Positions 17,662 through 61,875 of a stretch of DNA of 64,000 nucleotides are shown in pieces (position 1 is the first letter of the stretch; every line of letters starts with the position of its first letter). Under the pieces are notes generated by a model. That model had not been told where the DNA came from. It searched no databases and saw only the letters and a list, made by a program, of their open reading frames with translations. Where the stretch lies: sequence record PP456879.1, one strand, 5' to 3'. A program made the translations under genes and the position numbers.

Positions 17662-17712
17662 TTTTAAACTCCAACTAATGTATTAAAAAAATATGTCTAT
17701 ATTGAAAATAAA

Positions 17713-17732
17713 GCCCTCCCCGAAGGGAGGGT
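17713..17732 (-). terminator. terminator hairpin
   Basis: CCCTCCC-CGAA-GGGAGGG. Confidence 0.8.
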
Positions 17733-25694: not shown

Positions 25695-27635
25695 ATGAAT
25701 AAAATGCTAAACTTCCTAAACCGTACGCTATATAGCGGTACTGAAAAAGTATCTTCAAAAGCTACACCAAGTCTAGAACACTTTAAAACAAATGTTGAAC
25801 AAGTAGATAAAAAGATTCTACAACCCTTTAGTACTAAATTTAAAACCATTCTAAAAGAATGTTACAGTAATGAGGAGTGGGTTGAAGAACAATCATTTAT
25901 TGAAGAACCTATTGATCTTGGTTCAGCTGCACGCGGTCTTACCGAGCGCGGTATTATGCGTGGTGATTGGGGACGCTTAGCGCATTCCACTATTAAAGAA
26001 GCAGAAGGTATGATGCGTACTTATAGTGGTCGTCTAAATGAAGATATGGAGGCATCTGAAATTAATGAAGTAATTCAAGATATGCCTTATAACTTCACAG
26101 CTGGCTCAGCTAATACTAGCCGTTTAGAAGAAGATGACTCTATTTTTGTTGAAGCAGATACAACTGTAGTTGAACCTCTGTCTAAGCAGACTCTGCCAAA
26201 AGTAGCAGAGCTTACTAATCAATTAGTGGAAGTCTATAACCGAATTACTGAAGAATTTACAGAAACTGGTATTGCTAAAGTTGAACAAGTTGAACAGCCA
26301 GCAGTTCTTGTAGCACTTGGTGAGATCATTAGTAGTTTTAATAAACTAATTGATTTATCTTGCGGTGCTCTACCAGTGGAAGAAACTGTTATTGTAGAGG
26401 AGGATCCGTTACCTGCCATTGTTACTGGTCCAACTACTGAACCCATTGATGGTGAAATTCTACCGGTTGATGCTATTAATAATTCTGCGGCATTAGAAGA
26501 ATTCATTGAAGAAGTATTAAGTACTAATCCAGAATTCATTAAATATCAAAGTATGAATGATAGTAATATTGATTCATATCTAACTGGGGATGACTGGATT
26601 ATACTGAAATTCAAAGATGGTTCTTATTATTTATACAATGCCCAAAGTGCCGGTGAAACGAATATAGAAATCATGAAAGATATGGCCGAAACTGGTAGTG
26701 GTCTTAATGGTTTTATAAATCGGGTTATTCGTGGCGGGTATGTAGAGAAGTCCATCATTAATACTCCCGGTTTTATACAAGTCTCAAATGAAGGTCTTAT
26801 CGATTCAATCAAAAAAGTTCTTGGCATTTCTAATCGAGGTGATCAGAAACGTATCTGGCGTTCATCGTCCAGTGCAAGAGGATTTCTGGAACAACTAGAA
26901 TCTACATTTGGCAATCCACAATGGCTTAATAAGCAGGTATTCGTTACTGGCGATATCAATAGTAATGGTATAGCTAACGTACTGAGTATTAATGGTAAAG
27001 TCAGTATCGAGGATGCCATTCGTGCAGTAGAACCATTCTTCAAACTCGAAGAAAAGTCTAATCGCGAAATGGAGTCTTACAGGCAGAAGACTAAACCTGC
27101 ATTGGATCTACTCATTAAGAATGCACATAACCTAGACGCTAACGTATACAAAGAAGCAAAGGCTATCGTAGACAAGGCACGTGCTGGATTCAAGACTAGT
27201 GTTAAATGGCCTGCCGGTACTATTACAGGTAAGGGTACCTATAATTCACCTCGCACCGTGGTCGCGAAATATCCATCTACTGATAGTAAACTCAAAGCTC
27301 TTACTGAAGAAGAAGCAGCTAAGGCCATGAACTTAATTATATCGGCATTGGAACGTCAGATAACTCTTAGCTTCAAGTTCCCTGATTTACCAGATCCACT
27401 GGAAGGACTAATCTACGATATGTTGGATAACCCTAGTCCAATAGCTGGTATCGATTACTATGATTGGAATGATTTGTTATTCGCATGCTTTGGCCCTGGG
27501 ATTGATGATGATGTGATGGAAGTTAATAAAATGCGGCAATACCACTCATTCATTGATATCATGGAGGCCGCCGCAAAATGGGTAGATCGGTCTATAAAAG
27601 GTAGGTTAGCAATGGGTAATGAAAACTACCAGTAA
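25695..27635 (+). CDS. internal head protein (phiKZ gp303-like) with embedded KTSC-like domain
   Basis: 646 aa; S/A/G-x-E prohead-protease-type sites (SNE-E, ALE-E, SNE-GL); synteny after nrdB. Confidence 0.6.
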   Translation: MNKMLNFLNRTLYSGTEKVSSKATPSLEHFKTNVEQVDKKILQPFSTKFKTILKECYSNEEWVEEQSFIEEPIDLGSAARGLTERGIMRGDWGRLAHSTIKEAEGMMRTYSGRLNEDMEASEINEVIQDMPYNFTAGSANTSRLEEDDSIFVEADTTVVEPLSKQTLPKVAELTNQLVEVYNRITEEFTETGIAKVEQVEQPAVLVALGEIISSFNKLIDLSCGALPVEETVIVEEDPLPAIVTGPTTEPIDGEILPVDAINNSAALEEFIEEVLSTNPEFIKYQSMNDSNIDSYLTGDDWIILKFKDGSYYLYNAQSAGETNIEIMKDMAETGSGLNGFINRVIRGGYVEKSIINTPGFIQVSNEGLIDSIKKVLGISNRGDQKRIWRSSSSARGFLEQLESTFGNPQWLNKQVFVTGDINSNGIANVLSINGKVSIEDAIRAVEPFFKLEEKSNREMESYRQKTKPALDLLIKNAHNLDANVYKEAKAIVDKARAGFKTSVKWPAGTITGKGTYNSPRTVVAKYPSTDSKLKALTEEEAAKAMNLIISALERQITLSFKFPDLPDPLEGLIYDMLDNPSPIAGIDYYDWNDLLFACFGPGIDDDVMEVNKMRQYHSFIDIMEAAAKWVDRSIKGRLAMGNENYQ

Positions 27636-27650
27636 TGTATCTAATATTAT

Positions 27651-27790
27651 GTAGAAATAATCCCTCCCCCTTGTTTCTACATTAGTCATAATAGATCGGA
27701 GCCAGTCCCCCTTCCAACTGGCTCCCAGAGAGTAAAACTCTTTGCTGGGCATTAATGACGATATATCGCCTCCCTTCGGGGAGGCTTTAT
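27651..27790 (+). ncRNA. candidate late small RNA with two C-rich loops
   Basis: TATG start, 10-bp and 9-bp stems, closing stem, own UUCG terminator 27768-27785. Confidence 0.6.
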
Positions 27791-27848
27791 ATTTTGTTTT
27801 TACGTATGTATATTAAAATATGTATAAACAACATAGAGTAATTATAAA

Positions 27849-28301
27849 ATGATCAAAAATGAACTTTTACCAGGGCTAATCTATGCCCAAAAAGAATTTG
27901 ATAAAATTGCAGCTAATGTAAAAGACTATGATAAGTATAAAAGACGCGAAGCTGGTAGGGCAAGTGCCGTTTTAAGAAGTCTAGTGAGCAATATTGTAAA
28001 TCAGAATAAACCATCCTCACTTGAACATGAAGGCAAAGTTAGTACTACTAATACTAATGAATATTTAGAAGAAGTTAATAATTACTTCTTTAACATTAAT
28101 AATATTAAATTAATTTCTCCTAAACTCATAAAAGAGAAATTAACAATTGATCTAATGAATATTTATGTTAAATGGAATATGATTGGAGTGGCTGGCCGAA
28201 ATGATGTTCCAATTATTGAACACAGAATTAATGATTGGTGCGAAGTGACCGATGTCTACATTAATGGTAATAAGATAACTTCTTTACAATGGCCACGTTG
28301 A
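27849..28301 (+). CDS. hypothetical protein
   Basis: 150 aa. Confidence 0.7.
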   Translation: MIKNELLPGLIYAQKEFDKIAANVKDYDKYKRREAGRASAVLRSLVSNIVNQNKPSSLEHEGKVSTTNTNEYLEEVNNYFFNINNIKLISPKLIKEKLTIDLMNIYVKWNMIGVAGRNDVPIIEHRINDWCEVTDVYINGNKITSLQWPR

Positions 28302-28359: not shown

Positions 28360-28444
28360 GCCCGAATGGTGAAATTGGTAAACACAGAAGACTTAAAATC
28401 TTCCGGCTACGGTCTTGTCGGTTCGAATCCGACTTCGGGCACCA
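28360..28444 (+). tRNA. trnL: tRNA-Leu(TAA)
   Basis: cloverleaf with long variable arm, anticodon loop CTTAAAA, encoded CCA. Confidence 0.95.
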
Positions 28445-28453
28445 ATTTAAATA

Positions 28454-28529
28454 CGGAGTGTAGCGCAGTTGGTAGCGCGCCTGCTTTGGGAGCAGGATGT
28501 CGGGAGTTCGAGTCTCCCCACTCCGACCA
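28454..28529 (+). tRNA. trnP: tRNA-Pro(TGG)
   Basis: cloverleaf, loop TTTGGGA, CCA. Confidence 0.95.
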
Positions 28530-28928: not shown

Positions 28929-28980
28929 TATACTAGCCTCCCACTTGGGGGAGGTTTTATACTGTCTCATTGAGGAAAAC

Positions 28981-29210: not shown

Positions 29211-29498
29211 ATGGAACATCAAGAACAAAAAGAACTATTGAGACAACCATTACAAACACTTTATAATCTTACTTTTAGTCCCCGTTTACGTAATGGAGCG
29301 AAGGCTCCCGATTGGATTCACCTGACCGATGAAGTAACCCTATTCCCAAACGGATTAGATATTACAATCAACGCTGTTACACGTTGCATCAAATGGGAAC
29401 TTATCGGCGAGGATGTAAGTAACATTACTTATGTTGAAGCTATGTTCTTTAATAAAGGTCTTAAAGCAGTTAAAACCTATCTCAAACATACGGAGTAA
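29211..29498 (+). CDS. hypothetical protein
   Basis: AGGA RBS before ATG 29211. Confidence 0.65.
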   Translation: MEHQEQKELLRQPLQTLYNLTFSPRLRNGAKAPDWIHLTDEVTLFPNGLDITINAVTRCIKWELIGEDVSNITYVEAMFFNKGLKAVKTYLKHTE

Positions 29499-31151: not shown

Positions 31152-31203
31152 AATAATAATATTTATAACTATTTAGATAATTATACTGGCACGATGATAT
31201 TAT

Positions 31204-31385
31204 GTAAGAGTACTATAATAAAGTATTCTTAAATCTATCCACTAAACACACTCGGTGGTAGAACTTATTATAGAGTGTGTCTAAATGCCAGGGGTTTGCC
31301 ACCCCTGGTTATATTCATTGTTACTATTATAAATTCATTTATAGATGAGAAAAGGTTTTATCACCTTTTCAAAATCGGCATTTAA
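31204..31385 (+). ncRNA. candidate structured leader or ncRNA
   Basis: TATG start followed by four or five stems with G-U pairs on + strand. Confidence 0.4.
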
Positions 31386-37734: not shown

Positions 37735-37855
37735 AATAAAGCCCTCCCCGAAGGGAGGGCATTATCAATAGGTGGGATCTCGGCGGCACCTTCATTTGCG
37801 GACGGGAACGCTGAAGGGAGATAGTCCGGGAGATCCCGATTTGGGTATTCTTTAC
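37735..37855 (-). ncRNA. candidate GC-rich structured RNA
   Basis: TATG start, nested stems 37774-37837 (40/64 GC), UUCG terminator 37741-37760. Confidence 0.45.
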
Positions 37856-44519: not shown

Positions 44520-44553
44520 TATGCTTTATAAGAGTTATGGTTATCAATTAACT

Positions 44554-44910
44554 TCAAGGTAGTAGTGTGGCAGTATTGAAGTGATTGGTTACTGCTTCGA
44601 TCAGCATTTGCTCGATGTTGATTTTGTAGTATTCTGGTTCTTCGTTCAATTCCCAAATAATAGTCGCACGTAATAGTGCAGGTGCTATGAATCTAACTAC
44701 CTTACCATGTGTGTCAAACTCTACATTGAACATTGCATATTGTTCAGTAGTATGATTTTTATAGAAAATGAAATTACCAGCGTAACTGCGAACCTCTATT
44801 TCACCATGAATACTGGAGTAGGTTTCCTGGTGGAATACTTTACCTTTAAGGCGTGTATTCTCTTCAATGATATTTACCAATTCTTTCAATTTGTCTTTAT
44901 CTAGTTGCAT
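44554..44910 (-). CDS. hypothetical protein
   Basis: 118 aa. Confidence 0.7.
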   Translation of the reverse strand: MQLDKDKLKELVNIIEENTRLKGKVFHQETYSSIHGEIEVRSYAGNFIFYKNHTTEQYAMFNVEFDTHGKVVRFIAPALLRATIIWELNEEPEYYKINIEQMLIEAVTNHFNTATLLP

Positions 44911-51281: not shown

Positions 51282-51299
51282 GCCTCCCCGAAGGGAGGC
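51282..51299 (-). terminator. terminator hairpin
   Basis: GCCTCCC-CGAA-GGGAGGC. Confidence 0.75.
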
Positions 51300-61819: not shown

Positions 61820-61875
61820 CAAAAAAAGATAAATAAAACCCTCCCCGAAGGGAGGGTGTATATTAAGTAATTATT

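Follow-up and report, generated by a model that had tools for sequence, protein, structure and literature searches.

The DNA analysed here, 64,000 nt from record PP456879.1 (the window), is 100% identical to Pseudomonas phage vB_Pae10145-KEN51, with equal coordinates, and 99.5–99.9% identical to phiKZ (AF399011), which is in the reversed orientation; as judged by these identities, it is that of a phiKZ-type jumbo phage of Pseudomonas aeruginosa. A small RNA gene of about 141 nt (27651..27791, + strand), defined by a published transcript, its fold and a covariance model, sits in the 213-nt spacer separating PHIKZ303, a virion head protein gene (25695..27635, +), from PHIKZ302 (27849..28301, +), which encodes a 150 aa protein of unknown function and is reached by read-through from the small RNA. 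There is no terminator between the PHIKZ303 stop codon and the small RNA, so the sequence of the RNA doubles as the PHIKZ303 3′ untranslated region (UTR). Past PHIKZ302 the order is tRNA-Leu(UAA) and tRNA-Pro(UGG) (28360..28529, +), the conserved downstream neighbours of the small RNA, followed by PHIKZ301, tRNA-Met and a terminator near 28935–28955. Besides being the 3′ UTR of PHIKZ303, the small RNA serves as 5′ leader wherever transcription reads through into PHIKZ302, tRNA-Leu, tRNA-Pro, PHIKZ301 and tRNA-Met.

The promoter box (27636..27651, +) ends in TATG (27648–27651), with G27651 as the +1 nucleotide. Late promoters of phiKZ carry a TATG motif, the G of which is the +1 position for the non-virion RNA polymerase (Yakunina et al. 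2015, PMC4666361), and the small RNA has the TATG and G start of such a late transcription unit. At the other end is a leaky intrinsic terminator (27768..27796, +), recognised from its sequence as the stereotyped type of this phage. Its hairpin, GCCTCCC-TTCG-GGGAGGC (GCCUCCC-UUCG-GGGAGGC in the RNA), occupies 27768–27785 and is followed by an interrupted U-tract (TTTATATTTTG), within which a length of 141 nt counted from G27651 ends, at 27791. With a GC-rich hairpin, a U-tract, a discrete transcript and no conserved open reading frame (ORF) found within the locus, this is an intrinsically terminated small non-coding RNA.

The transcript itself is already known. A 141-nt RNA upstream of PHIKZ302 (TU237, terminator T131) was detected in phiKZ by ONT-cappable-seq (Putzeys et al. 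2024, microLife, Fig. 6B; PMC10914365), its length and abundance were verified by northern blot, and a full-length read-through transcript was seen as well. According to the main text of that paper, the short and full-length forms have a common capped 5′ end, TU237 is listed among 17 phiKZ 5′-UTR-derived non-coding RNA candidates, and leaky 5′-UTR terminators are general in these phages, with a short and a long form at 34 of 42 (PMC10914365). By position, length and terminator as described there, the small RNA is the same molecule as phiKZ TU237/T131, and because the transcript has been published it is not novel as a feature. For TU237, the main text of PMC10914365 describes neither a structure nor loop motifs, and neither homologues outside the genus nor a function. 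The 141-nt RNA is not reported in the earlier phiKZ differential RNA sequencing (dRNA-seq) and Grad-seq papers, and no functional study of it was found in the literature after 2024.

On the + strand, RNAfold predicted a 5′ hairpin and a three-way junction (−54.3 kcal/mol, z = −6.68; 0/200 shuffles as good), while the minus strand gave a different fold and z = −3.06. Stem-loop 1 (27651..27680, +) has a 10 bp stem, GTAGAAATAA/TTGTTTCTAC, with the loop TCCCTCCCCC at 27661–27670 (UCCCUCCCCC as RNA, 10 nt). The junction is closed by a helix with its 5′ arm at 27685..27692 (+) and its 3′ arm at 27751..27759 (+), in which A27754 is bulged. Within it are stem-loop 2 (27698..27725, +), a 9 bp stem GGAGCCAGT/ACTGGCTCC with the loop CCCCCTTCCA at 27707–27716 (CCCCCUUCCA as RNA, 10 nt), and stem-loop 3 (27726..27744, +), with 8 bp and an AAA loop, in which there is one compensatory position and G-U changes to G-C. 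The predicted probability of being unpaired is 0.85 for loop 1 and 0.91–1.0 for loop 2. All of these elements, from the TATG with G27651 as the first base of stem 1 through the three stem-loops and the closing stem to the UUCG terminator, had been proposed in the original prediction for this locus, which was made from the sequence alone, and lie where it placed them. It had also taken the G-U pairs to favour the + strand, and both these pairs and all wobble substitutions in relatives fit that strand only; the discrete RNA of about 140 nt that it expected exists as the 141-nt transcript seen by ONT-cappable-seq and northern blot in phiKZ (PMC10914365).

To judge from sequence and position, the RNA is a member of a new family that occupies one locus in three genera of nucleus-forming jumbo phages infecting P. 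aeruginosa: Phikzvirus, Pawinskivirus and phiPA3. The route to the homologues led through remote PHIKZ303 relatives in phiPA3, PA1C and 201phi2-1, and then through a phiKZ covariance model (R1), which scored 47.7 bits (E = 2e-9) for the phiPA3 homologue (L034:4878-5038) and 42–57 bits for that of PA1C (L035:4949-5130). Both matches directly follow a gp303-like gene, and such a gene precedes the RNA in all three genera. Independent evidence comes from blastn, in which the PA1C RNA matches phiPA3 at E = 3e-11 and Phikzvirus at E = 2e-7 to 4e-4. The set was enlarged by three more Pawinskivirus variants. All homologues have in common the promoter box TATGTAATGnTATG, GUAGA at +1, the 5′ hairpin, the three-way junction and a CCUCCC-type terminator, and the promoter block TATGTAATGnTATGTAGA is kept in Phikzvirus subgroup 2, Pawinskivirus and phiPA3. 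In Pawinskivirus, tRNA-Leu and tRNA-Pro lie about 40 nt past the terminator, with no PHIKZ302 homologue between; the pair directly follows the RNA in PA1C, PS119XW and HPP-Temi, and tRNA-Leu follows it in phiPA3. Viewed from the gp303-like gene, the Leu-Pro pair is kept after it in Pawinskivirus, and Leu alone in phiPA3.

The syntenic loci of 201phi2-1, Phabio and Viktualia hold no homologue. A loop-anchored pattern gave 18 matches in IMG/VR, of which phage PA7 alone was real, R1 scoring none of the other 17. A junction-anchored pattern found PA7 only in IMG/VR and nothing in metagenomes. A stem-loop 2 pattern returned PA7 and phiPA3 only from IMG/VR, and its single metagenome match was a chance one in GC-rich coding sequence.

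Base pairing in the family was scored in an alignment made by MAFFT from sequence only (A5), covering the 5′ 90 nt and the three hairpins of nine sequences from the three genera. Standard pairs filled 95.2% of cells, compared to 39–52% (maximum 51.6%) when the partners were slid, and five pairs had changed on both sides. The covariation score was 0.266 versus 0.162 for shuffles, and was reached by 0/500 of these. Stem-loop 2 had 100% paired cells, its top two base pairs varying as U-A/C-G and G-C/C-G/A-U, and stem-loop 1 showed further compensatory pairs across genera. For stem-loop 3 the MAFFT-based count was preferred, the count from the hand-register script being inflated by the register of the bulge. 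The closing helix was registered by hand from individual folds, since MAFFT and the model failed to align it; its variants (GUCAUAAU/AUU-AUGAC, GGAUCACAGC/GUUGUGAUCC, GAACCGCAGC/GUUGCGGUUC and CUCGGC/GUCGAG) show compensatory double changes at 7/10 positions across the three genera, a count that depends on the hand-made register. Pair counts excluded alignment A4, in which the sequences were forced onto model R1 and the out-of-genus insertion ended up inside the loop of stem-loop 3. Compensatory substitutions thus occurred in independent lineages (three clades), as in a structured RNA family under selection. The scaffold of a 5′ hairpin plus a three-way junction is supported by covariation, and the small RNA is very probably a real, selected, structured non-coding RNA.

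Searches for a known class gave little. Rfam 15 at the gathering threshold found tRNAs only across the window, and a permissive scan of 27600–27860 gave terminator-driven matches only, far under threshold, with no leader or riboswitch among them. A tRNA or tRNA-like element was rejected: ARAGORN and the Rfam tRNA model are silent at 27651–27791, and the junction is three-way, not four-way. Nor does the RNA show the features of a riboswitch or attenuator leader, the junction strands being entirely different from genus to genus (AAUAGAUC versus GCGCC; CUGGGC versus none) and no alternative helix being conserved.

Within Phikzvirus the small RNA was found in 47/47 records at 88–100% identity, and nine representatives, comprising six distinct RNA sequences, were compared. 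In stem 1, one A-U pair has become G-C by a compensatory change; three changes affect one side only and remain compatible with pairing solely as G-U on the + strand; and one terminal pair is lost. Where the loops vary within the genus, the change is always C to U, so that pairing with G is kept. The RNA is single-copy: a second model (R2) matches once in the whole phiKZ genome, at 101.7 bits, and neither R1 nor R2 found a paralogue within phiKZ, the weak R1 matches all being terminators. The RNA forms a conserved island with mosaic flanks on both sides. On the left, at 27636–27637, DNA homology to 35/47 Phikzvirus genomes breaks exactly at the PHIKZ303 stop codon, owing to replacement of the protein's C-terminal quarter in those genomes; their gp303 proteins align with that of the window over residues 1–506/509 only, at 75–77% identity. 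On the right, the T2P/U1B/U5 group carries a PHIKZ302 allele (27849–28301) that is 68% identical in protein, and the adjoining RNA differs by 1 nt.

The two pyrimidine-rich loops behave differently from the rest of the molecule. Loop 1 reads UCCCUCCCCC in Phikzvirus (UCCUUCCCCC in the phiKZ reference), UCACUCCU in Pawinskivirus and CCUACUCCU in phiPA3, and loop 2 reads CCCCCUUCCA or UCCCCUUCCA in Phikzvirus and AACCCUUCCA in both Pawinskivirus and phiPA3. All homologues have the loop 2 core CCCUUCCA without change, and all except the phiKZ reference (CUUCC) keep CUCC in loop 1. The loops are conserved while the adjoining base pairs change across genera, and neither the junction strands nor the pre-terminator spacer have any sequence common between genera. 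A scaffold that drifts around fixed loops points to the loops as functional surfaces, and speaks against a junction that binds a ligand. Across about 281 kb of phiKZ sequence, C-rich tracts 9 nt or longer number 61, of which only these two sit cleanly in hairpin loops. One other (L031:27110) is unpaired too, although the weak fold around it forms no hairpin loop; nearly all the rest are arms of terminator hairpins, and the remainder are mixed. The original prediction looked to covariation and to loop conservation among relatives, and both are seen over three genera (five double-change pairs, none of the 500 shuffles as high; loops kept throughout). The CCUCC core that it saw in loop 1 is present in the window but is not universal, as the phiKZ reference has lost the pentamer by a C-to-U change. 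It is moderately probable that the loops are functional recognition elements.

Outside the loops, Pawinskivirus and phiPA3 have an extra stretch, UCUCCUUGUUGUGUUGAUG, before the terminator (L035:5045-5095, L034:4975-4995, L036–L038), and Pawinskivirus carries an additional one, CCCCUCCUUUC. Both are absent from phiKZ and contain CUCCUU, similar to the 16S rRNA tail, and both are predicted to be only partly unpaired (P = 0.43–0.64).

The reading we favour overall, though tentatively, is that of a trans-acting RNA working through its loops. The helices would serve as a scaffold with the loops as the working parts, and the RNA, once released, would act in trans through them. The loops would most probably base-pair with purine-rich single strands of the GGAG/GGAAGG type, such as the Shine-Dalgarno (SD) regions of host or phage mRNAs; read-through into the tRNA operon would then follow secondarily from the leakiness of the terminator. 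That the partner is RNA rather than protein is also held tentatively, and it is unlikely that the partners are specifically ribosome-binding sites (RBSs).

A more specific form of this reading, the RNA as an anti-SD mimic showing two to four single-stranded motifs like the 16S tail, appears distinctly unlikely. The motifs are CCCUCCCC and CCCUUCC in phiKZ and ACUCCUC, CCUCCUU and UCUCCUU in the homologues of Pawinskivirus and phiPA3; both CCUCCUU and UCAC-UCCU are similar to the 3′ end of 16S rRNA, GAUCACCUCCUUA. At least two unpaired C/U-rich motifs complementary to GGAG/AGGA are conserved in homologues, as in an anti-SD-type small RNA, and at the level of motifs the homologues lend the idea some plausibility. 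Such a mimic would rival ribosomes for SD sequences, or titrate a factor recognising the 16S 3′ tail, and would shift translation toward phage messages with weak SDs. If this were true, it would be a phage RNA that reprograms translation initiation globally, and not mRNA by mRNA.

Several results weigh against the trans-acting reading, foremost those of the search for partners, which covered the phage genome. No RBS site stands out there as a target, nor do RBS sites exceed background as they would for an anti-SD-type small RNA. The RBSs of the phage are short: at 115 crude ORF starts of the window, GAG is found 39 times, AGGA 38, GAGG 19, GGAG 15 and GGAGG once. Loop pairing with such short SDs yields −3 to −8 kcal/mol and is no stronger than that of the 16S tail. 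Lax criteria gave ten RBS-proximal sites for loop 1 and eight for loop 2, none under −14.4 kcal/mol, and at least two of these, when checked against the annotation, were internal codons and not gene starts. The strongest loop complements are instead the 3′ arms of terminators, which are already paired; sites at −12.5 kcal/mol or better in these arms number 66 for loop 1 and 56 for loop 2 genome-wide, reaching −18.6 kcal/mol, and the remaining strong complements are nearly all hairpin arms too. Because the RBSs are short, the pairing is weak and terminator arms dominate, the occlusion of RBSs of phage genes is without computational support, and the original proposal that the RNA occludes GGAGG-type RBSs finds no outstanding site in the phage genome. 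To these points are added the small sample (10 distinct sequences in three clades from a single host species, P. aeruginosa), the hand-made register behind the closing-helix count, and late timing, which is suggested by the TATG motif alone, no time-course data on the small RNA having been found in the literature. Furthermore, the invariant 8-nt loop is equally well explained by protein recognition, and the site directly upstream of a tRNA cluster in three genera, with read-through, also fits a cis-acting leader.

Two further observations concern possible partners. Upstream of PHIKZ038 (L029:10198-10232; phiKZ about 31,197–31,231) is a TATG followed by a hairpin with two G7 runs (GUGGGGGGGACCCUUUGGGGGGGUCCCAUAUA), very unusual for a genome of 37% G+C and predicted to be closed; no other long G-run element complements the C5 stretches in the loops. 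A T-box-like role, suggested by Pro and Leu codons in the loops, was dropped, as no conserved pairing was found between the loops and the neighbouring tRNAs.

A cis-acting leader or attenuator, by which the RNA and its leaky terminator set the read-through into PHIKZ302, PHIKZ301 and the three tRNA genes and the abundant 141-nt species is a terminated by-product, is possible though doubtful. This model is kept because the RNA doubles as the PHIKZ303 3′ UTR and the read-through 5′ leader. It is favoured by the shared 5′ end of the short and full-length transcripts (main text of PMC10914365), and by the RNA always standing before the tRNA-Leu(/Pro) cluster, with no intervening gene in Pawinskivirus. 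The loops can also pair with the 3′ arm of the RNA's own terminator (GGGGAGG, 7 bp, −15.4 kcal/mol), a conceivable antiterminator contact, but the antiterminator helix is not convincing, since the adjacent 5′ arm would outcompete the distant loops. Nor is there an aptamer-like core, the junction strands and the pre-terminator segment not being conserved, and Rfam shows no leader or riboswitch match apart from the terminator. The leakiness of 5′-UTR terminators, moreover, is general in these phages, at the 34 of 42 given in the main text of PMC10914365. Lastly, a second TATG (27820..27823, +) lies 26 nt 5′ of the PHIKZ302 start codon and is invariant in a nine-genome alignment in which the spacer around it has substitutions and indels. 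Conserved in this way, it may serve PHIKZ302 and the tRNAs as a promoter of their own, and could drive PHIKZ302 independently of the small RNA.

A protein-binding scaffold or decoy, the loops of which bind a phage or host protein that the abundant RNA titrates or delivers, is judged unlikely. The candidates for such a protein would be a factor that recognises nascent phage terminators by their C-rich 5′ arm, or a binder of the pyrimidine-rich 16S 3′ tail. An invariant 8-nt loop core on a covarying stem, and the presentation of two similar loops by one scaffold, are what this explanation expects; loop 1 is identical to CCCUCCC, the consensus 5′ arm of the terminators, from which loop 2 departs by one C-to-U change. 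The extra CUCCUU motifs in Pawinskivirus and phiPA3 give the multi-site architecture typical of sponge RNAs, and the lack of an RNA target in the phage genome points the same way. However, no candidate protein is known, and Pfam and PHROGs searches of the PHIKZ301, 302 and 303 proteins gave no functional hint and no recognisable RNA-binding domain. Loop 1 also varies between genera (8–10 nt, and in sequence), which fits short seed pairing better than a fixed protein site.

The terminators of phiKZ are a subject in themselves. They are stereotyped, with (G)CCCUCCC, a tetraloop, GGGAGGG(C) and UUUAU, and about 54–66 copies occur genome-wide; examples in the window between 9607 and 61856 are found at 17703–17731, 37742–37762, 51284–51298 and 61842–61856, and others occur throughout L027–L032. 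The C-rich arm is always 5′ on the transcribed strand, whichever strand that is, and this uniformity and orientation bias exceed the needs of hairpin stability alone.

Pairing of the loops in trans with the GGGAGGG 3′ arms of about 60 terminators, which would raise read-through or expose 3′ hairpins to exonucleases late in infection, is very unlikely. The arms are the best complements of both loops genome-wide, and once G-U pairs are allowed, dozens of copies of the consensus arm (U)GGGAGGG fit the invariant core of loop 2, so the complementarity proposed in the original prediction is present, but the arms are locked in stable hairpins. These have 7–8 bp of G-C capped by a tetraloop and form in cis within milliseconds, so that a trans-acting loop is left without a toehold. 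Such complementarity is, moreover, trivial for any C-rich sequence where terminators are made of C and G arms, and the loop 1 of Pawinskivirus and phiPA3 (ACUCCUC) fits the arms less well.

It is extremely improbable that the locus encodes the 48-aa antisense protein KEN51_CDS0044 (27606..27752, −), or that the RNA is a functionless promoter-terminator by-product: several Phikzvirus records annotate the ORF, the frame of which stays open throughout that genus, yet within-genus substitutions are mostly non-synonymous for that frame, the ORF is missing from the phiPA3, PA1C and HPP-Temi homologues, where the helices persist by compensatory changes, the transcript detected is from the + strand (main text of PMC10914365), and covariation over three genera argues against a functionless by-product. 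KEN51_CDS0044 looks like an annotation artefact from its pattern of substitution and is judged spurious, in keeping with the original statement that the locus has no ORF.

Several known systems resemble the small RNA in part. The hairpins of RsaE/RoxS and RNAIII belong to host-encoded small RNAs of the Gram-positive Firmicutes with C-rich loops, which pair with SD regions through UCCC motifs and have validated targets. The present RNA is like these in having several unpaired C-rich motifs in apical loops, a 3′ terminator hairpin and a length of 100–150 nt, but it is phage-encoded, reaches no Rfam family, has no phage target, and the RBSs of its phage are weak matches. In the Gram-negative Helicobacter pylori, RepG uses a C/U-rich terminator-proximal loop as a seed on a G-repeat in a 5′ UTR. 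The conserved C/U-rich loops described here would likewise suit a G-rich single strand, but no G-repeat leader target was found, the only G7 element being itself a closed hairpin. Species 1 and 2 of T4 (rnaC, rnaD) are abundant structured RNAs of about 120–140 nt in a tRNA cluster, processed from a tRNA precursor; by description they are alike in being structured RNAs beside phage tRNA genes, whereas the present RNA has its own promoter and terminator. The sRNA005/sRNAgp182 family occurs in 201phi2-1, phiKZ, EL and phiPA3, and shares a 5′-UTR origin, premature termination and positional conservation across jumbo-phage genera (PMC11512511, which also mentions one small RNA just upstream of a tRNA). 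The family differs in locus (the tail gene gp182) and in sequence, and the present RNA is absent from the syntenic locus of 201phi2-1.

Other RNAs of the phage were noted in passing. Two further small RNAs of phiKZ have been published, 3′UTR_PHIKZ298 (about 31202–31315 in the window, +) and an RNA of about 71 nt upstream of PHIKZ221 (L028:7859-7935, +); both start at TATG-GUA and lack C-rich loops, so there is no loop family within phiKZ. Between 28360 and 34305 the window has seven tRNA genes (Leu, Pro, Met, Asp, Asn, Asn and Thr) among small ORFs. Elsewhere in phiKZ, segments at L029 about 29420–29480 and 44520–44600 (phiKZ about 50.4 and 65.5 kb), near PHIKZ056/056.1 and PHIKZ072/072.1, share ...GGGUGAAG(.)UUAAGAUAUAGUCUG..., which we take to resemble a group I intron core.

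The small RNA is real, functional-looking and already reported, and the mechanism proposed for it is testable but unsupported. What is new is the family in three genera, the fold supported by covariation, and the pyrimidine-rich loops as its conserved elements. The small RNAs of virulent phages are almost wholly uncharacterised, above all in nucleus-forming jumbo phages, where transcription and translation are physically apart. Its northern-validated abundance and three-genus conservation make this RNA one of the more strongly founded choices for an initial functional study, with conserved loops that offer precise mutational targets and a motif content that suggests a sharp hypothesis, anti-SD mimicry. 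If the RNA were instead a cis-acting leader, it would show phages metering their own tRNA supply without coupled translation.

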